The position numbers were made by a program, and so were the translations under genes. The notes below the pieces were generated by a model that made no database searches, was not told the origin of the DNA, and saw only the letters and a program-made list of their open reading frames with translations. From the sequence record MF360958.1: a stretch of DNA of 64,000 nt; one strand, 5' to 3'. The stretch's first letter is position 1, and each line of letters begins with the position of its first letter. Below are positions 594-17,988 of the stretch, one piece after another.

Positions 594-1172
594 TTAACTG
601 AAATGTTTATTAATTTCTTTATATAATTTTTGAACTAATTCTGTTGTATTTTTAGGATCACTATAATGATATAATTCTACGTTTTTATCTTTGAAAAAAG
701 AAAACGCACTTTCAAAAAATATATCATCTTCATTGAGACTTACTTCAATATTCGAATAAAAATTTGTAGAATATAGTTTATTTTCTAAAGAATATATATA
801 ATCAAGTTCTTTCTTCCTAATATGTGCCGAATCATTTTTATTTAATTCACAATAAAAATGACGTTGTGTTACATTTAATAAAAGTTCATAAGGATTAGTT
901 ACTGGATCTATTAAAAATGTGTTTAAATTATACTTTTCAGCAAAATAAAGACAGTAAAATGAACCTAAATTACAACCTATAAAATGAATTTTCTCATAAG
1001 GATTATCATACTGTTGTTTTATTATTGTTTTGATGTATCTCATACATTTAGTAGGAGAATTAGGAAGATTTGGTGTTATAAATTTATATTGTGGAAGATA
1101 GTATTGTAAAAGATCACTTTTCGAACATTGACCTGATGAATTAAATCCATGTAGAAAAATGATCTTATCCAT
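594..1172 (-). CDS. YqiA/YcfP-like alpha/beta hydrolase, probably catalytically altered
   Basis: N-terminal IIFLHGFNSS motif and FLIDPVTNP segment; nucleophile elbow reads GCNLG instead of GxSxG. Confidence 0.75.
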   Translation of the reverse strand: MDKIIFLHGFNSSGQCSKSDLLQYYLPQYKFITPNLPNSPTKCMRYIKTIIKQQYDNPYEKIHFIGCNLGSFYCLYFAEKYNLNTFLIDPVTNPYELLLNVTQRHFYCELNKNDSAHIRKKELDYIYSLENKLYSTNFYSNIEVSLNEDDIFFESAFSFFKDKNVELYHYSDPKNTTELVQKLYKEINKHFS

Positions 1173-1194: not shown

Positions 1195-4008
1195 TTAAAG
1201 TTTCATTATAAACGCTAATGCATAATATGGTGGTAAATTTTTATCAGTACCATTCTCACCCGTAGAATTTGTATTTAAATTATGTGAATGAGCCCCGCCA
1301 TTATCCACATTTAAGGAATGGTTATGATTACCAGCTGAATTAGTAACCCTATTCTTATACCAAATAAAGTTGTTGTCTGTATCCTTATGTGGTGGTCCGG
1401 GGTAATTATCTCCGGGTCTAAATTCATTACCATCATCACCACCTTTATATGACTCAATAAAATAACCATCTCTATATCCATGTGTATGATCTCCTTTACT
1501 ATCAGTACTACCAGTATGTGAATGTGATCCACCTTCAGTAGTTGAGCCATCATGTGTATGTTCAACTACTACAGCATCCTTAGAACCTCCTGTATCATTT
1601 TCAGAATAGTTACCACCAGCACCTACTATAAAACGATCTGTTAAATCAGGAGTGCCATTTGAACCATCACAATTATGTACAATAATATCATTTGCTATAA
1701 ATGAACGATTATCTTTAACTTTTATATCATAACGTTTTTTAAACTTACTAAGATTCATTTGCGATTGATCTACATCATTAATTAATTTATTAGATTTTAC
1801 TTTTAATTTGTAAAACATTCCATTAGAATTATTAATATTGTAATTAATAATGGTATCATCTTCAACAAGATCTTTTGCTTCCACCCAACCTTTGTTATGT
1901 ACCCAGATGGGATGATTATTCGTGAGATTAATGCTTATTTCATCAATAACTGATTCCACAATCAGTTCTCTCCATACAGAATTGTCTTCAACATCATTAC
2001 AGAACCAATCTATTATTGGTTTTGATTCTATTAAACCATTATATTCATTATAACTAAGAACATTAACCTTTTCTTTATTTTCAACAATTTCTTTTATTTC
2101 TTTCTTAGAACCATCCTCTAACGTAACAAATGTATCACCCGTGACACATAATGCCCAGCCTGCCGGAATATTATTAATAAGCCCAGACCACATTATGATT
2201 CCACCTGTAGGAGTGCCCGTAGCTTCCGCAATAAGTTTATCTACTTCATCTTGTGTATAATATCGACTATCATGATCAGCGGAATTAATATGATCATGCA
2301 TTCCTTTTGCACTTAACACATCACCATCAGTAGTTGATGTGCGTGTATCAGTTATTGTCATAATTCCTTTATGAAATACATCATTACCATTAATTGTCAC
2401 ATTATTAAATTCAACATTATCATCTTCAGAAATTTTTAGTGCGTTTCTACCATCATTAGGTGTTTCTGATTCTATTAAGTCAAAACCAGTTTGTCCAACA
2501 TCTAAACCAATATTTAGACGGGCTTGTTCTTTTGTTTCTGACTTTATTAATTTTAATCCTACAGTGCCTGTTATATCAGTGTTGATATATTCTGACCAAT
2601 CAGACCATGAAAATCCATTATATGATCTTATGCTACTTTTTTTAGAATCACCTCTGTATGCTATTTGATGAACCCAATTATTAACACCGGGTCTATATAC
2701 AATTAAACTACAAGAATTAGTATAAGGATTTCCAGAAGATTGAGATGGTAATCTATAAATTCCTGTTGTAAAAGCAATATCTGCATCTGTTATTTCTTCA
2801 CCGGGATCACTATTTACGCTCAGTCCATATTTTTGTATAATAGTATATACACTCTCAGGAGTTGTAGCTACTGAGTCATCACCATTAATTGATTGCTGTT
2901 CATTAGAAAATTTAACAGTTCCTTTTGAATCAACTTTAGCTGTAGTAATATTACTTCCATCTATGTTAAGATTATTCCATTCACCATTATATTTCTTTTC
3001 AAATATATTACTATTATGGTTAAATCTAATTGAATTTTCTGGAAGTTTACTAATATTAGTAGTTTCAAACATTGTAGCATACTCGCTACCTTCCAAGTCA
3101 TCCAATTTATCAGCATTAAGTTTAGAATTAATACCGTCAACTTTTATAATTTCATTCAAAAGATAATTAGGTGTTAGTAAATTCTTAAAATTATCTAAAT
3201 TAGTTTTTAATGTATTTACAGCTTTACTAGTTGCGATATGATTACTGCTAGTGTTTTGTATAGAGTCACTAAGAGGGTTTTCTGAATTATTATAAATAGT
3301 AACCCAATCTTTAAATTCATTTGTATCATGATAACGATAACGTATTTTATTACTATCGGTAGAAAGGAATAACTGTGATTGACTATCATAATCATCAGAT
3401 TTTAGGTTTAATAAATACCCGTCATCATTATTTGGGCGGTTTTTTGTTATATTCCCAACTTTATATTGATCACCCACCAAGTTATTGAGATCATCAACAT
3501 TATCCTGTGGTTGTGTTATAAAATCGCTAACATCTAAATCATATTCATATATAAATTCGCCATTATCACTGACTCTAAGTATAAGAAAACGATTCTCATA
3601 ATCGGAATAATTAGAACTAGGATGTATATCTGATACTTTTATTTGATCACTTTCTAACTCATTTAATGAATTTATTCGAAGCCATCCTTCACCAGTAATT
3701 GAATCAGACCAATCGATATGTGTAGGAGCGACAAGTTTTGGCACATAAGAATTAATATCTTCACGATACATCATTACTGTATTTTGTTCTGTACCATCAC
3801 TTTTTACAGGAATGCCATCAAAATACTTAGCATTTGAATGTATAGTAAATGTGTCTTCATTTAAATGTTGTTCGATTCGCCTGAATAAATCTTCATAAGT
3901 AAATTTATATTCTGTGCCATCTTTAGAAACTAAAAGTAATGTATTATTATCAATAGTATAAACTTGATCTAATTGATGTAATTCAGTTGTTTCGTAATTT
4001 TGAGCCAT
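1195..4008 (-). CDS. tail fibre/needle protein with tail-collar-like domain, interrupted by an intein
   Basis: PTGGIIMWSG..IPAGWAL|CDGSNGTPDLTDRFIVGAG collar motif once the intein is removed; several HxH motifs and C-terminal NLPPYYALAFIMKL typical of fibre tips; gp53-like/fibre segments upstream. Confidence 0.85.
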   Translation of the reverse strand: MAQNYETTELHQLDQVYTIDNNTLLLVSKDGTEYKFTYEDLFRRIEQHLNEDTFTIHSNAKYFDGIPVKSDGTEQNTVMMYREDINSYVPKLVAPTHIDWSDSITGEGWLRINSLNELESDQIKVSDIHPSSNYSDYENRFLILRVSDNGEFIYEYDLDVSDFITQPQDNVDDLNNLVGDQYKVGNITKNRPNNDDGYLLNLKSDDYDSQSQLFLSTDSNKIRYRYHDTNEFKDWVTIYNNSENPLSDSIQNTSSNHIATSKAVNTLKTNLDNFKNLLTPNYLLNEIIKVDGINSKLNADKLDDLEGSEYATMFETTNISKLPENSIRFNHNSNIFEKKYNGEWNNLNIDGSNITTAKVDSKGTVKFSNEQQSINGDDSVATTPESVYTIIQKYGLSVNSDPGEEITDADIAFTTGIYRLPSQSSGNPYTNSCSLIVYRPGVNNWVHQIAYRGDSKKSSIRSYNGFSWSDWSEYINTDITGTVGLKLIKSETKEQARLNIGLDVGQTGFDLIESETPNDGRNALKISEDDNVEFNNVTINGNDVFHKGIMTITDTRTSTTDGDVLSAKGMHDHINSADHDSRYYTQDEVDKLIAEATGTPTGGIIMWSGLINNIPAGWALCVTGDTFVTLEDGSKKEIKEIVENKEKVNVLSYNEYNGLIESKPIIDWFCNDVEDNSVWRELIVESVIDEISINLTNNHPIWVHNKGWVEAKDLVEDDTIINYNINNSNGMFYKLKVKSNKLINDVDQSQMNLSKFKKRYDIKVKDNRSFIANDIIVHNCDGSNGTPDLTDRFIVGAGGNYSENDTGGSKDAVVVEHTHDGSTTEGGSHSHTGSTDSKGDHTHGYRDGYFIESYKGGDDGNEFRPGDNYPGPPHKDTDNNFIWYKNRVTNSAGNHNHSLNVDNGGAHSHNLNTNSTGENGTDKNLPPYYALAFIMKL
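1672..2148 (-). mobile_element. mini-intein (159 aa, Hint domain, no endonuclease) in the tail fibre gene
   Basis: starts CVTGDT (Cys1); block B TNNHPIW; block F RYDIKV; ends IIVHN followed by Cys+1; removal restores GWALCDGSNGTPDL. Confidence 0.9.
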
Positions 4009-6048: not shown

Positions 6049-7032
6049 TTACTCTTGTCTGCGTTCAAAATCTTCTGAATCAAGATCTAAATCAAATTCA
6101 TCTTCATCATTGTCATTTTCTTTTTCATCATTGTCAATACTAGTATCATCATCTTCAGATTGATCTTCATCTTCAGATTGATCTTCATCTTCAGATTGAT
6201 CTTCATTTGCTTCGTCATCTTCAAGAGATCCAATATCAGGTTCATCAACCATATTTTCTTCAGAATTTTCATCACCACTTAACATATTAACAACATCATA
6301 AAAATCATCTTTGGATTGATCAATAGTTTCGAGAATATTATTTAATGCACTATTAAGTTTTTCACGAATTTGATTACCTGTTTCACTAGAATATTCAGAA
6401 TTAACCTTTTGAACAAAGCTATCTAATGTTTCATTAAGCATTTCACCAATTTTAGCTTGATAATTAAGAATATCATCAAGAAGACCCTGTGCTGCCATAA
6501 TTGTTTCAGCACGTTCAGTATCTTCATTCATTTTCATTCTTAGTTGCTGCCCTACATCATTTTTAAAAACTTCTTTTTTAAGACGACTCAACTTTTCATT
6601 AAGCTCTTTAGATTTTTCATCAAAGCCGTTAGTATGTACATAGTTTTCATATAAACTTTCAAGATGAGCAATTTTTTCTTTAGGGGATACTGTTTTTGAC
6701 ATTTTTGATTTACCTTTTTGTTCTTTATTCTCTTTTATAGATTGTCCTGACGATTTAATAATATCAATATCTGAATCATATTTTTCATTTTTCATAACAA
6801 TATCACATGCTTCAATAATTAGAAGTGCTTTATTATAGTTTTTATCTTTATGATAAGTATTATATGCACTATTTTCAACAACTTTATTTTTTAAGTTTTT
6901 AGCTTTTTCTTTAAGATTTTTAGCTCTTTCAAATGAAGAATCCATACTTAAAGTATTATTATAATTAAATGATTCTTTGAGCATTTTATTAATGCGATCC
7001 AAACGTTTTTGATTAATTCTTTTGTCAGCCAT
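6049..7032 (-). CDS. putative prohead core/scaffold-like protein
   Basis: helical composition, several (L/I/M)xE sites, very acidic C-terminal tail; function is inference. Confidence 0.55.
   Translation of the reverse strand: MADKRINQKRLDRINKMLKESFNYNNTLSMDSSFERAKNLKEKAKNLKNKVVENSAYNTYHKDKNYNKALLIIEACDIVMKNEKYDSDIDIIKSSGQSIKENKEQKGKSKMSKTVSPKEKIAHLESLYENYVHTNGFDEKSKELNEKLSRLKKEVFKNDVGQQLRMKMNEDTERAETIMAAQGLLDDILNYQAKIGEMLNETLDSFVQKVNSEYSSETGNQIREKLNSALNNILETIDQSKDDFYDVVNMLSGDENSEENMVDEPDIGSLEDDEANEDQSEDEDQSEDEDQSEDDDTSIDNDEKENDNDEDEFDLDLDSEDFERRQE
6151..6204. repeat. 3 x 18-bp perfect tandem repeat encoding (EDQSED)3
   Basis: ATCTTCAGATTGATCTTC at 6151, 6169 and 6187. Confidence 0.9.
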
Positions 7033-12255: not shown

Positions 12256-15200
12256 TTAAGCTCCTTTGAAAGTCATTAATACCCATGTATCTGCGAATTT
12301 TAAAGTGTCACCTGTAAACGCATCTACGTGTGAAGCACCCATATCTGTCATGTTTAGGGTATATTCTTGATAAAATCTTGGTACTGAACTATCGTTTGTT
12401 GAAGGCATATTATAGTTCCCAAATGGTTCTGTTTTTGTATATGATGTTGCTTCATCACGATTGTATATATAACCAGTACCAAGTGCCTGATCTAATGGGC
12501 GTTGCTTATAAACACCTCCCGTAAATTCACCTGTGCCACTATCATATTCCGCAAGAGCCCCTGTAAATGCGTAGAAATTTATACCACTAGGGGGATATGG
12601 ATAAACTAATGTTCCTATATGTGCGACAGTACCGTCAGCATCAGCAATTTCAATATGTAAATTCCCAGAAGGATTAATAATATCTGCAATATTATTACTA
12701 CTATCATATACTACCCGGAATGATTCAAATACTGCATCCCCCGAACTGGAACCACCTGAAGGAATATCTTGTGGTTCATATTCACCATTAGTATCATTGT
12801 AAACTAAAATCTGTCCGTTAGTTGGCGCAGTAGTACTTATGTCTGTTAGATCACTACTTGCTAATGATGGAGATGTAGATGTGTTATCAATAACTTCAAA
12901 ATTACCTGTAGAACTGTTGTATGCAAGAATCTGACCATCACTAAGACCAGTTGTATCTACATCAGCTAAATCATTAATATTTGTAACAAGATTTACGGTT
13001 TCATTTACAAAATTTGTACCATTATAACGAATAAATTGCCCACTAGATGGACTACTTACTGAAACATCAGTTAAATCATTTAATGTTGAAATATTTGATG
13101 ATGTTTGATCTTGTGGTTCAAACACATTATTTGATGAATTATATACAAGAACTTGACCATCTGTAGCTCCACTTGTATTAATAGTACTGAGTATAGATAA
13201 ATCATAAGTCTTGTTAACAAAATTAGTTCCATCATATTCTAAAATTTGACCATTTTCTAGAAAAGATATATCAACATCAGATAATTCATTTAGTTGTTGT
13301 GCCCCTTCATTTATGCTAGAAGGTACGAATTGAGAACCATCCCATTGTAAATATTGATTGGTACTAATATTTGATATATTAACATCATCAAGATTCGACA
13401 GCTGTGTTCTTCCTTCGATATAATCAATAGGTATAAATTGAGAACCATCCCATTGTAATATTTGATCAAGACCTATACTACTAATATCCACATCATTTAA
13501 GTTTCCTATTTCATTTACACCTTGAATAAGATCGATAGGTATAAATTGAGAACCATCCCATTGTAATATTTGATCAAGACCTATACTACTAATATCCACA
13601 TCGTCAAGATCGTTAATTTTTTCTGCGCCCTCAATATTATCAACAGGTACAAATTCAGAACCATTATACTCAAGGATTTGTCCTGATGTAATGCTTGAAT
13701 AATTTACGTTAGCTAAATCATTAATATTTGTAACAAGATTTACGGTTTCATTTACAAAATTTGTACCATTATAACGAATAAACTGTCCGTTAGACGGACT
13801 AGTTACTGAAACATCAGATAAATCATTTAATGAATTAACAATTTGAACCGTTTTCTGTTCAAAAAATCCACTTGTGGAGTTGTATACTAGATAATCACCA
13901 TCTGATGGTGATGAAATATTAAACCAATCAAGTTTTTGAAAATCTATAGAACGATTAGTAAAATCTGTGCCATTATATACTAGTACGTCATCGGTTGTTA
14001 AAGAACTAATATCTGTATCTGTAAGATCAGATATTGTTGTTGATGTTACATTATCAACAGGTACAAATTCAGAACCATTATATTCAAGGATTTGTCCACT
14101 AGTAGGAGCAGTAGTAGATAAGTCAACATCACTTAATCCATTTAGTTCTGTAGCCCCCTCTGTTATTGTTGAAGGTACGAATTGAGAACCATTCCACTGT
14201 AGATATTGATTAGAATTTATATTCGAAGCATCAACATTTGTAAGATCGAACATACTAATCAATGTTACATTATCAACAGGTACAAATTCAGAACCATTAT
14301 ATTCAAGGATTTGTCCACTAGTAGGAGCAGTAGTAGATAAGTCAACATCACTTAATCCATTTAGTTCTGTAGCCCCCTCTGTTATTGTTGAAGGTACGAA
14401 TTGAGAACCATCCCATTGTAAGTATTGTCCTGTACTAATAGAATCTAATAATATATCATTAAATTCACTAATACTTTCACCTAACACATTAGGTTGTTTT
14501 GATATAAAGTAACCTTGAGATGAATTAAATGAAAGTATATCATTATCATTTGGAGATAATGAACCATCAACATCACCCAACTCTGATAGTTGTGTTGCAC
14601 CAATTCCATCACTTGTTATGGTTTGAGCACTGAATGATCCAGATGAAGAATCGTATATCAAAGCTTGCCCGTCACTTGGAGAAAGAGTATCGCTGACATC
14701 ATTCAGTTCAGATAATTGAGTCGCACTTCCAGTTCCAGTAGTAGTAGTCACGAAATAACCACTATTAGCATCGTAAATAAGTATCTGTCCATCCATTGGA
14801 CTAAGATTGGGATCGATTTCAGGCAAATCAGTTATATTTTTTACTGCATCTATATTTTCAAAATTAGTTGTAACAAATGCTGAACCATCAAATTGTAATA
14901 TATCACCTGCTGAAATATTATTAAATACAACATCATTAAATATGGATATTGATTCATTAGATAATTTATAAGGAACAAATTCAGAATTATTAGCATCCCA
15001 ACTAATTAGATCGGTATTGTCCAATTTAATAGTTTCAGAGCCATTAACCGTTTCTTTTACATTAATACCATTTAAATCTGTTATATTATTTCGTATGTCT
15101 AATGTTGCATTAATGAAAGAACTTCCTGACCAAATTAAGGCTTCACCACCATCAGGAGAAGTAATATTAACATCACTAATATCGTTTAATTGATTAATTA

Positions 15201-17988
15201 CAGGAGGTTTATTAGAAGCAATATAGTTACTTCCATCATATTCTAAAATTTGTCCAGATACAATACCGCTATCATCAACATTTGAAATCTCATTTAATTG
15301 GTTAATTGTTCCAACATCAGGATTTCGTACAAACTTACTACCATCCCATGTTAAAGCATCACCACTTTGTATGTTAGATAAATCTACATCTGAAAATACA
15401 TCAATAGTAGTTAGTTCATCTGAAAGATTTATTGGTACAAAATTTGTTCCATCATACTGAAGTATCTGGTTACTAGAGACTGTATTTATATCAACATCAG
15501 TAAGATCATTTAGTGAAATACTACCTACATTTATATCAGCAGGTATAAATTGAGAACCGTCCCATTGAATAACCTGATTAGTAGTTATGGATGAAATATC
15601 TACATCAGACATATTACTAATTGAATTATTTTGTATGATAAATTCTGAGGTACTATTGTCATATACAAATGTTGCACCATGAGAAGGAGTTTGATAATTT
15701 ATATTAAGACTATCGTAGATATTTCTTGAAACATATTCATTGGTATTTGAATCATAAATGATAATGTCGTTATTATTTGCTGTTTCAAATATTATAGCAT
15801 TTTTGTTAACAAATTCAGAACCATTGTAAATAAGAACTTGATTTTGAGATAATGAACTAAATGTTGTATCTTTTAAATCTGCAACTGATAAGAAATTGTC
15901 TTTACTAATATTTTCAAAAGAACTATCTGTTTGATTATAAACAAGAATATGATTATCAGATATAGAAGTTATGTTAATGTCATCCAAATCATTCAAAGTT
16001 GATCTATCAATATTATTAATACTTATTCTTCGGAAATAACCATTAGCAGCATCATATGCAAGGATATCATTATCGGAATAAGATGATGATGAATTAAATG
16101 GTATAATATCTTCATTGACAAAGTTATTACCATTGAATACAATACCTTGACCCTGTTGAATATTAGAAGCATTCACATCATTTTGTTTAAGTATAGTATC
16201 AGAATCAGATAATGCTTCAAAATAATTTTGCGAAGCATTATATTTCAAAATATAACCATTCTGAATATTATTAATACTATTTGAATCAACATCTGTGAGT
16301 TCTGAGACTGATTGAGAAACAGTTATATTTAAATCATCAGAAGATGCTGGTACAAATTTACTTAAAGAACCATCCCATATAATAATATTGCCATCATTAA
16401 TAGAACTAAGATCTATATCTTTTAAATTATTAACTGAAATATTACCTAATTCAGTTGATAAATTTTGTGTATTTAAAAATTTATTATTATTAGTTTCAGT
16501 TAAATCATCAGTTGTCATATTAGCAAAAAAGCTATCAAAATTACTTTGATTAAGATACTTTGCATTTTGAGATTCCATTAAATCATCAATATATTGAATT
16601 TTATCTTCAGGAATCCATATAGAATTAGAACTATCATAGACAAGATATTGATTATTAGTTAAACTATTAAGATCTACATCATTTAAATCAGATATATTAA
16701 TATGTGTATTAATCCAAAAACCATTATCAAATTTTAAAAATAAACCATTGCTAGATTGACTAATATTCGTATCGGAAATTTGAGATAATTGTATTCCATA
16801 GGATGGACTATCTATATATGTTGTTATATCATTAAAAGTTCTTTGCTGATTATAATATAAATTATTATTTCCTTCAGGAATATCATCAGTTGTATTAATA
16901 TCTACAACAATGTTTCCAAAAGTCCATTGAGAACCATCCCATATAGGAGCTTGGTTTTCTTGGGGATTGCCATCAACTAACCCAAGATCTTGTATAGTAA
17001 CATTTTGAAGATATGATTCTACACGGCTATCCGTATAATATAAATTATTATTTCCTTCGGGAAGATCATCAGTTGTGTTCGAAATATCAGCATCAATAAT
17101 AAGTTCTTCACTATTAGAAGATTGTTTAATAGTGATGCCATTACCTTCTAAAAGTGTTCTATATTGAAGAATACCACCTATTTTTCCAGAAAATAATTCA
17201 TAACCATTGCCTAAATTCTCACCATTTATAACATCTCCATCGCCTGAACCACCAGAAAGATTTAAAACACTAACAGGAACAACTTCCCATAAACTGCGTG
17301 AAGCATTATAATACAGCACACTTTCATTTTGAATATTTGAACTATCAACATCATGAAGATTGTTTAGAAAGTTATTTTCTGGAACAGTTGCAATCCAATC
17401 GTTTTCTGAATCGCTCCATTGTAATATATTACCATCTTCGGCAGAACCTTGTGAAATTGTTTGTGTGGTTATGGATTCGGTTGCCGTGCCGTGAAATGTT
17501 ACAGCAAAAATATTTGCAAATCTTCTACCATTTGAACCTAAGTCGTATGTGTTATCATCATCAGGAAGGTTAGATGCATTTGCTTCAAGAAAAGCAGAAT
17601 GAGATTCTTCTACTGAATAAACATTTAAATTACTACGTGCTTTTTCTGAATCCAGATCTGATAGATTTTTTGATATTTGTACTAAATCATCTTTCGTTAA
17701 TGAATCTAATGTTTGTGCATCACCATTGAAATGAATATCAACTGTAGCACCATTATTGATAATATCAATACCATTACTACCAGTAATTGATTTTATTCTA
17801 ATGGTTCTTCCTTGTATATCATTGAATATTCTTTCACCCGAGCCCATACTAAAACCATTTTCAACAATAGTATCTACATTAAATAAATTAAGTGTTGGTT
17901 CTGTATTAATGAATTTTTTTTGAATTTCATCATAAATTAATATATGATTAGAAAGTGGATTGTTTATATTGAAATGTTCATCAGACAT
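12256..17988 (-). CDS. giant repeat fibre protein (1910 aa)
   Basis: dozens of ~35-aa repeats L.DL.DV.......GQ.L.(Y/W)DGS.FVP; N-terminal DDDNTYDLGSNGRRFANIFA fibre motif. Confidence 0.85.
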   Translation of the reverse strand: MSDEHFNINNPLSNHILIYDEIQKKFINTEPTLNLFNVDTIVENGFSMGSGERIFNDIQGRTIRIKSITGSNGIDIINNGATVDIHFNGDAQTLDSLTKDDLVQISKNLSDLDSEKARSNLNVYSVEESHSAFLEANASNLPDDDNTYDLGSNGRRFANIFAVTFHGTATESITTQTISQGSAEDGNILQWSDSENDWIATVPENNFLNNLHDVDSSNIQNESVLYYNASRSLWEVVPVSVLNLSGGSGDGDVINGENLGNGYELFSGKIGGILQYRTLLEGNGITIKQSSNSEELIIDADISNTTDDLPEGNNNLYYTDSRVESYLQNVTIQDLGLVDGNPQENQAPIWDGSQWTFGNIVVDINTTDDIPEGNNNLYYNQQRTFNDITTYIDSPSYGIQLSQISDTNISQSSNGLFLKFDNGFWINTHINISDLNDVDLNSLTNNQYLVYDSSNSIWIPEDKIQYIDDLMESQNAKYLNQSNFDSFFANMTTDDLTETNNNKFLNTQNLSTELGNISVNNLKDIDLSSINDGNIIIWDGSLSKFVPASSDDLNITVSQSVSELTDVDSNSINNIQNGYILKYNASQNYFEALSDSDTILKQNDVNASNIQQGQGIVFNGNNFVNEDIIPFNSSSSYSDNDILAYDAANGYFRRISINNIDRSTLNDLDDINITSISDNHILVYNQTDSSFENISKDNFLSVADLKDTTFSSLSQNQVLIYNGSEFVNKNAIIFETANNNDIIIYDSNTNEYVSRNIYDSLNINYQTPSHGATFVYDNSTSEFIIQNNSISNMSDVDISSITTNQVIQWDGSQFIPADINVGSISLNDLTDVDINTVSSNQILQYDGTNFVPINLSDELTTIDVFSDVDLSNIQSGDALTWDGSKFVRNPDVGTINQLNEISNVDDSGIVSGQILEYDGSNYIASNKPPVINQLNDISDVNITSPDGGEALIWSGSSFINATLDIRNNITDLNGINVKETVNGSETIKLDNTDLISWDANNSEFVPYKLSNESISIFNDVVFNNISAGDILQFDGSAFVTTNFENIDAVKNITDLPEIDPNLSPMDGQILIYDANSGYFVTTTTGTGSATQLSELNDVSDTLSPSDGQALIYDSSSGSFSAQTITSDGIGATQLSELGDVDGSLSPNDNDILSFNSSQGYFISKQPNVLGESISEFNDILLDSISTGQYLQWDGSQFVPSTITEGATELNGLSDVDLSTTAPTSGQILEYNGSEFVPVDNVTLISMFDLTNVDASNINSNQYLQWNGSQFVPSTITEGATELNGLSDVDLSTTAPTSGQILEYNGSEFVPVDNVTSTTISDLTDTDISSLTTDDVLVYNGTDFTNRSIDFQKLDWFNISSPSDGDYLVYNSTSGFFEQKTVQIVNSLNDLSDVSVTSPSNGQFIRYNGTNFVNETVNLVTNINDLANVNYSSITSGQILEYNGSEFVPVDNIEGAEKINDLDDVDISSIGLDQILQWDGSQFIPIDLIQGVNEIGNLNDVDISSIGLDQILQWDGSQFIPIDYIEGRTQLSNLDDVNISNISTNQYLQWDGSQFVPSSINEGAQQLNELSDVDISFLENGQILEYDGTNFVNKTYDLSILSTINTSGATDGQVLVYNSSNNVFEPQDQTSSNISTLNDLTDVSVSSPSSGQFIRYNGTNFVNETVNLVTNINDLADVDTTGLSDGQILAYNSSTGNFEVIDNTSTSPSLASSDLTDISTTAPTNGQILVYNDTNGEYEPQDIPSGGSSSGDAVFESFRVVYDSSNNIADIINPSGNLHIEIADADGTVAHIGTLVYPYPPSGINFYAFTGALAEYDSGTGEFTGGVYKQRPLDQALGTGYIYNRDEATSYTKTEPFGNYNMPSTNDSSVPRFYQEYTLNMTDMGASHVDAFTGDTLKFADTWVLMTFKGA
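12964..13782. repeat. 72-bp exact direct repeat (12964-13035 = 13711-13782)
   Basis: identical by inspection; 747-nt in-frame offset. Confidence 0.85.
13427..13602. repeat. 68-bp exact direct repeat (13427-13494 = 13535-13602)
   Basis: identical by inspection; 108-nt in-frame offset. Confidence 0.85.
14043..14411. repeat. 150-bp exact direct repeat (14043-14192 = 14262-14411)
   Basis: identical by inspection; 219-nt in-frame offset; encodes TITEGATELNGLSDVDLSTTAPTSGQILEYNGSEFVPVDNVT twice. Confidence 0.9.

Follow-up and report, generated by a model that had tools for sequence, protein, structure and literature searches.

Introduction

Phage inteins have been reported mainly from proteins that act on nucleic acids or nucleotides, the usual hosts being terminase, polymerase, helicase, RecA, ribonucleotide reductase, and portal proteins. 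The 13 mycobacteriophage extein groups of Kelley 2016 are all nucleic-acid-binding, the portal included, and the word "tail" occurs nowhere in that text (PMC5050341); in a cryoconite virome, inteins were present in 0 of 36 tail fiber/collar genes, with one in a minor head protein (PMC7468147). Here, we analyze the first 64 kb (hereafter, the window) of the genome of Salicola phage SCTP-2 (MF360958.1), in which gene 4 (ASV44019.1; positions 1195–4008, minus strand) carries a mini-intein in a protein that resembles tail fibers. An initial annotation, made from the letters of the window alone, had drawn attention to this insert and had placed it against the premise that phage inteins occur chiefly in nucleic-acid-handling proteins, a premise with which both surveys agree. 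The gene 4 element is very probably a decayed homing intein, that is, a selfish element, that is spliced out constitutively to leave a 778-residue fiber with an intact collar motif.

The solved class-1 mini-inteins with which it can be compared (8ubs, 7cfv, Mtu RecA 3ifj, and those of Npu and Ssp DnaB) have as their hosts ribonucleotide reductase, DNA polymerase III, RecA, and DnaB helicase. They share with the SCTP-2 intein the Hint fold (template modeling [TM] scores of 0.72–0.77), a similar size, the Cys1 / TxxH / His-Asn / +1 nucleophile set, and the lack of an endonuclease, at 16%–28% identity, whereas the SCTP-2 copy resides in what is predicted to be a virion fiber-type protein. In the T4 fiber proteins gp37 and gp12, metal ions on the trimer axis are bound by the histidines of HxH motifs. 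In these proteins (2xgf, 1ocy, and 1pdi) and in Pvc13 (9qgo), which is the fiber of a Photorhabdus contractile injection system, a collar-type core precedes a series of HxH motifs and the C-terminal end is conserved, an arrangement that is also seen in SCTP-2, and the C-terminal region of Pvc13 has been likened to host-binding domains of phage short tail fibers (PMC12546770). These known fibers are free of inteins, whereas the SCTP-2 protein has a short collar variant with an intein in it.

Results

The Gene 4 Insert Is a Canonical Class-1 Mini-intein

SCTP-2 is a 440,001-bp jumbo phage with an AT-rich genome, isolated from an Italian solar saltern, and its host, Salicola PV4, is an extreme halophile of the same type of habitat. 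Over its initial 20 kb, the window agrees at 100% identity with the beginning of the SCTP-2 record. Gene 4, entered in the record as a "hypothetical protein," encodes a tail-fiber-like, intein-containing precursor of 937 residues (105.4 kDa). A 159-residue Hint-type insert had been proposed at 1672–2148, and both the coordinates and the length proved exact: the insert corresponds to residues 621–779 (18.5 kDa) and separates an N-extein of residues 1–620 (2149–4008; 70.0 kDa) from a C-extein of residues 780–937 (1198–1671; 16.9 kDa), all on the minus strand, as are the features given below. Each of the motifs named at that stage is likewise found, namely Cys1 at residue 621, TNNH at 696–699, YD at 760–761, VHN at 777–779, and Cys+1 at 780, and the set of splicing residues is complete and canonical. 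Block A (CVTGDTFVTLEDG; 2110–2148), which contains the Cys1 nucleophile, was assigned from its motif and from alignment A3, and block B comprises the TNNH stretch from Thr696 to His699 (1912–1923); A3 shows no variation at the His of block B (intein residue 79) or at C1, T3, L10, and G13 of the intein. Blocks F and G (YD ... IVHN; 1672–1743), which contain the penultimate His and the terminal Asn, were assigned from the motif, from TIGR01443, and from alignment A1.

Matches to curated profiles, obtained with the insert alone, are far above chance: 38.6 bits (E = 1.2e-9) against Pfam PF14890 Intein_splicing, for which the cut-off is 35.8; 38.6 bits against TIGR01445 intein_Nterm (cut-off 24.5); and 21.7 bits against TIGR01443 intein_Cterm (cut-off 15.6). 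Among Protein Data Bank (PDB) entries, the insert matches by sequence the NrdJ-1 intein (8ubs; E = 6e-10) and the Spl DnaX mini-intein (7cfv). With AlphaFold, the insert was modeled by itself on a 7-sequence alignment (a word-indexed search with the intein region gave three proteins), and the resulting structure has a predicted local distance difference test score (pLDDT) of 87.3 and a predicted TM score (pTM) of 0.82; each of its top 50 Foldseek matches among PDB structures is an intein or another domain of the Hint fold, with 8ubs leading at a TM score of 0.77 and the Mtu RecA splicing domain at 0.76. Taken with the residue set, these data identify the insert as a canonical class-1 Hint-type mini-intein.

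The description of the insert as lacking an endonuclease also holds, there being no LAGLIDADG or HNH match within the 159 residues. The place that PF03161 occupies in relatives is taken by a 36-residue linker (intein residues 100–135; 1744–1851), delimited by alignment A1, by split phmmer matches, and by comparison with mini-inteins, and this linker is probably what remained after loss of the endonuclease. The G+C content at third codon positions (GC3) is 0.176 in the intein and 0.145 and 0.152 in the exteins; because the intein matches its exteins in this respect, it is not a recent arrival, its residence having lasted long enough for it to take on the codon composition of this AT-rich genome.

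The Intein Interrupts a Motif That Is Continuous in Relatives

As initially described, the insert splits the collar motif, with flanks GWAL|CDGSNGTPDL, and lies upstream of a conserved HxH array. The N-terminal half of the collar core motif (GGIIMWSG...PAGWAL, residues 602–620; 2149–2205) stops at the splice junction, and the C-extein opens with Cys+1. The motif is a short variant in which TPDL follows almost directly after CDG. With the N-extein and the C-extein treated as separate pieces, here and throughout, we matched the flanks individually against 120 relatives. The intein-free alleles that had been proposed as a check are plentiful: in 75 of these relatives, nothing separates one flank from the other (gap of 0) at GWxL|C[DN]G. 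The phrog_5795 "tail protein" profile spans the junction in the same manner, its positions 351–412 fitting the end of the N-extein (residues 558–619) and its positions 414–541 the start of the C-extein, and one intein-free relative, P0004, aligns unbroken across the junction to the solved fiber 9qgo. Cys+1 is the fiber's own cysteine and does not vary among the aligned relatives (41/41 and 30/30). With the site inside a motif that is invariant, and with a +1 Cys that belongs to the fiber, the earlier proposal that an intact fiber requires splicing appears to be sound.

A Family of Inteins Occupies the Collar Site

The initial annotation implied that the insert was one of a kind; it is not. When the intein alone was compared with 1.84 billion representative proteins, 894 matches were obtained at E ≤ 1e-3, and inteins at the collar site dominate the top of the list. 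Among 153 proteins examined, at least 29 clusters, that of SCTP-2 included, are clearly collar-site, 23 of endonuclease-bearing size and 6 mini. P0002, P0003, and P0006, for instance, have inteins of 363–367 residues at the identical site, with PF03161 LAGLIDADG_2 where SCTP-2 has its linker; LAGLIDADG_2 is present in all nine of the endonuclease-size members checked, and the endonuclease-size insert measures ∼205–225 residues. In comparison with metagenomic members such as P0003 and P0123, the SCTP-2 intein shares the site and the host protein family, and the splicing domains are 35%–53% identical; the other members are uncultivated. In P0130, which is more distantly related, such an intein splits a canonical Pfam Collar domain (65.7 bits) at about profile position 17, indicating that the lineage invades both canonical and short collar variants.

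Simple neighbor-joining trees were computed separately for the first 100 and the last 40 intein residues, the RecA, ligase, and helicase labels of the outgroup being read from flanking residues (except for P0198, which has helicase Pfam domains). In the N-region tree, the collar-site inteins stand apart from inteins at other sites, as they do, with a single exception, in the C-region tree. In at least four places, mini forms adjoin endonuclease-size sisters, and SCTP-2 is found beside P0123 in the N-region tree. This pattern suggests a homing intein lineage with repeated loss of the endonuclease, and, given that its collar-site relatives are mostly of endonuclease size, the SCTP-2 copy would be one of the decayed members.

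One outcome considered beforehand, that many tail-collar inteins might already be annotated at this site, is borne out as to their existence but not as to their annotation, since nearly all are unnamed metagenomic proteins; P0123 is labeled "intein/homing endonuclease" by the Joint Genome Institute (JGI), and P0003 "microcystin-dependent protein." The genomic contexts of collar-site members look phage-like, with large neighboring open reading frames (ORFs) and helicase and homing-endonuclease genes. The mini-intein collar gene closest to that of SCTP-2, P0121, lies on a 130-kb phage-like contig and has a GIY-YIG endonuclease gene directly upstream (L097 6680–9398).

Of 50,697 records of phage isolates, that of SCTP-2 alone has a collar-site intein; other isolates match the exteins alone, or have matching inteins that lie in genes for polymerase, helicase, RNA ligase, UvsX-like, and terminase proteins. 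When one genome for each of 185,579 species was scanned with narrow patterns, 80 collar loci were returned, 0 of them with an intein by profile, which is a weak negative, and a scan of IMG/VR with SCTP-2 peptides returned no collar-site intein, the inteins that it did return being in an NrdJ-type reductase and in a fragmented DnaE-like gene. In a full-text literature search whose coverage leaves out most subscription journals, there was no report of a tail-fiber intein. The collar-site family thus appears to be undescribed, and SCTP-2 is the sole cultivated representative among its known members. The fragmented DnaE-like gene deserves a remark of its own: in IMGVR_UViG_3300035698_024294 (L008 5758–8568) it is in pieces, with the intein halves on separate ORFs and a free-standing endonuclease-like ORF between them, resembling the "fractured gene" arrangement.

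The Host Protein Resembles Tail-Collar Fibers

The C-extein matches phrog_1800, "tail collar fiber protein," at E = 1.2e-13, and also phrog_5795, phrog_19618, and further tail-fiber families. It fits residues 281–434 of 9qgo_A, that is, the C-terminal domain of Pvc13, with the match opening exactly at CDG..TPDL; the E value is 6e-4 for the single sequence and 8e-17 for the family profile. Two profiles were used in these comparisons: A4, made from 30 short relatives, and A2, which is broader. A4 also strongly matches 6ov6 and 9nxk. Over the HxH region, both profiles match the T4 gp37 tip (2xgf), but weakly (E = 1.2e-3 with A4 and 2.8e-7 with A2) and in a stretch of strong compositional bias, and T4 gp12 is matched with A2 only. 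There is, in addition, a weak match (E = 0.011) between A4 and an adenoviral fiber chain (8on5) over the collar core (1627–2205), which fits a published remark on regions shared among such fibers (PMC12546770).

The HxH motifs of the C-extein form two clusters. Cluster 1 comprises HTH, HSH, and HTH (residues 817–843; 1480–1560), and cluster 2 HNH and HSH (residues 895–909; 1282–1326). H817, H819, and H907 are invariant; H829, H831, H841, and H843 are kept in at least 90% of A2, and H909 in at least 90% of A4. The initial annotation had placed all the HxH motifs C-terminal to the intein, which is correct for the five that begin at residues 817, 829, 841, 895, and 907 but not for a sixth, HDH at residues 571–573, which is in the N-extein. 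The two clusters are separated by a variable segment of 51 residues (844–894; 1327–1479) that, if the T4 gp37 tip is a guide, may form the distal portion in contact with the receptor. The protein ends in a conserved motif (NLPPYYALAFIMKL; 1198–1239) that is recognizable in the match to 9qgo_A and in the alignments of relatives.

The N-extein is of a different nature. Its last ∼60 residues fit tail-protein profiles, and the preceding ∼560 are without relatives: residues 1–559 have no relatives in IMG/VR by a peptide-pattern scan and no Pfam match, and in a tblastn search of phage isolates with the whole gene 4 protein, other phages were matched over residues 780–937 only. The phage relatives so found carry the annotations tail fiber or tail collar fiber protein. 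From these resemblances, gene 4 can be assigned to the tail-fiber-type proteins, with a putative location in the virion and a putative receptor-binding (adhesin) role.

Discussion

Proposed Maturation of the Gene 4 Protein

The residues present are those of the standard four-step class-1 pathway, by which splicing would proceed as follows. After translation, Cys621 would attack the Leu620 peptide bond in an N-S acyl shift; the N-extein would then pass by trans-thioesterification to Cys780, the invariant cysteine of the fiber; cyclization of Asn779 would free the 18.5 kDa intein; and an S-N shift would restore a normal Leu-Cys bond, giving a fiber subunit of 778 residues (∼87 kDa). This mature subunit would subsequently trimerize and load metal on the HxH array. 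Splicing and its timing are both predictions from the sequence, and splicing that is fast, constitutive, and completed ahead of trimer assembly is the most likely course. The intein would persist because only its exact removal restores the invariant motif. As to the choice of site, GWxLC[DN]G is the only strongly conserved stretch in otherwise hypervariable fibers and it provides a native Cys, so that it likely fits the logic of homing.

Weighing the Alternatives

Several observations weigh against the proposal of a decayed intein that is constitutively removed from a virion fiber. For SCTP-2, neither a virion proteome nor expression data turned up in the searched literature. The neighbor-joining trees are based on stretches of 100 and 40 residues and are without support values. 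A model of the precursor segment of residues 560–937, built on a 41-sequence alignment, has a mean pLDDT of 51.6 and is unusable for placing the intein in the collar fold. The SCTP-2 collar pieces score 10 bits on Pfam Collar PF07484, for which the cut-off is 24, covering profile positions 1–18 of 57, and the C-extein alone has no Pfam Collar match; even the nearest intein-free relative, P0004, scores 18 bits. The term "collar" therefore rests on homology to relatives and not on the curated model. Finally, the head genes are ∼75 kb away from gene 4 and the tail sheath gene is also distant, which, together with the orphan 560 residues at the N terminus, means that incorporation into the virion is deduced from the C-terminal domain only. 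The Pfam score and the orphan N terminus would also suit a gene 4 product that contains a real intein but is some other collar-domain protein, for example a decoration or whisker protein or a non-structural protein of the "microcystin-dependent protein" type. The position of the gene at the left end of the record, next to exonuclease and alpha/beta-hydrolase genes and outside any recognized tail module, and the JGI label "microcystin-dependent protein" for relatives point the same way. We nevertheless consider such a role improbable: the C-extein fits several PHROG tail-fiber and tail-collar families as well as solved fibers, phage relatives are annotated accordingly, the adjoining gene 5 has a weak tail-protein match, and gene 17 encodes a fiber-like repeat protein of 1910 residues.

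What the intein does in the fiber admits two further accounts. The initial annotation suggested that conditional splicing (salt, redox, metal, or temperature) or off-pathway cleavage might gate tail maturation or give tip-less versus tipped virions. On the conditional account, salt, redox state, or metal load near the HxH array would set the amount of adsorption-competent fibers or virions. Both junction residues are Cys, the HxH array begins 37 residues past Cys+1, the host is an extreme halophile in a hypersaline setting, and salt-, heat-, redox-, and metal-dependent splicing have been documented for some inteins (PMC10663303). These include a haloarchaeal intein from a likewise hypersaline setting, the salt dependence of which was shown experimentally (Reitter 2016, as cited in PMC10663303), whereas the SCTP-2 intein has no compositional signature of this kind. 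With a pI of 5.00 and a net charge of −7, its acidity does not exceed that of its exteins (pI 4.52 and 5.26), its sole extra cysteine, Cys50, is not kept in the nearest relatives, and its catalytic residues are all canonical, so that no signature of a switch is apparent. Moreover, the family occurs in collar proteins from many metagenomic sources that are not known to be saline and is mostly of endonuclease size, which is the signature of a selfish element and not of a host-adapted regulator, and SCTP-2 has several more inteins, in the usual genes. Conditional splicing is accordingly a very unlikely account, although, if true, it would make this the first intein to switch a virion adhesin post-translationally. 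Least probable of all is a Hint domain that does not splice, whether retained as an extra domain of the fiber or cleaving in the manner of BIL domains to leave a shaft without the HxH tip. BIL domains (2lwy and 6y75) do appear among the Foldseek matches, with TM scores of ∼0.7, and further decay can follow in mini-inteins once the endonuclease is gone. The insert, however, differs from BIL domains in that the +1 Cys is invariant and native, empty-site alleles are abundant, and the intein-specific curated profiles exceed their cut-offs, and every residue for the four splicing steps is in place. Retention would also break an invariant motif of a trimeric fiber domain that is continuous in the solved 9qgo and 6ov6, and the presence of three 18.5 kDa domains at this point is unlikely to be tolerated.

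Implications of an Intein Lineage in Fiber Genes

Like the mycobacteriophage inteins (PMC5050341), the collar-site inteins are phage-borne, lie in conserved motifs, include both endonuclease-bearing and mini forms, and are read as selfish elements that phages disseminate; the mycobacteriophage set has no tail-protein extein, whereas the SCTP-2 extein appears to be of tail-fiber type. With its 29 or more clusters, the collar-fiber lineage is thus a counter-example to the confinement of inteins to nucleic-acid and nucleotide proteins, and the availability of SCTP-2 as an isolate would allow a structural protein to be watched as it splices. The "hypothetical protein" of gene 4 can be re-annotated as an intein-containing tail-fiber-like protein, with a predicted mature length of 778 rather than 937 residues. 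An endonuclease that cuts beside the coding region of the receptor-binding tip could in principle influence the exchange of fiber tips among phages, and the endonuclease-bearing relatives could in this way promote co-conversion of tips between co-infecting phages.

Other Inteins and Neighboring Genes of SCTP-2

The genome of SCTP-2 is rich in inteins, none of which is annotated in MF360958.1. Pfam finds them in the terminase gene 224 (215993–218077), with an Intein_splicing match of 62.9 bits ahead of the Terminase_6C domain; in the RecA-like gene 204 (L011 38685–40655), where two stretches match Intein_splicing (62 bits) and Hom_end_hint is matched as well; and in gene 428 (L014 26800–29469), which encodes the ribonucleotide reductase alpha subunit and has Intein_splicing plus LAGLIDADG_3. 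A PolB mini-intein has been reported for SCTP-2 (PMC6892783); in the PolB gene 179 (L011 15064–18333), it is not detected by Pfam at E ≤ 1e-3. The gene 4 intein has no close copy elsewhere in SCTP-2: in a profile scan of the whole record only gene 4 is strong, and tblastn, even with the limit at E ≤ 1, matches the record at a single place, so that an origin as a recent copy of another SCTP-2 intein was rejected. The annotation "terminase large subunit" is given three times at widely separated places, to gene 224 and to the short ORFs 267 (256428–257321) and 534 (429356–429748), the latter two having no Pfam match.

ARAGORN finds no tRNA genes in the window. Gene 3 (594–1172, minus strand), which adjoins the fiber gene, is UPF0227 / alpha/beta-hydrolase-like (PF05728; 47 bits) and is an unusual neighbor. 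Gene 17 (12256–17988, minus strand), with nine phrog_9627 repeats and tail-fiber PHROG matches and without a collar or intein match, probably encodes another large fiber. Gene 8 (6049–7032, minus strand) has a highly acidic C-terminal repeat composed of EDQSED-type units.

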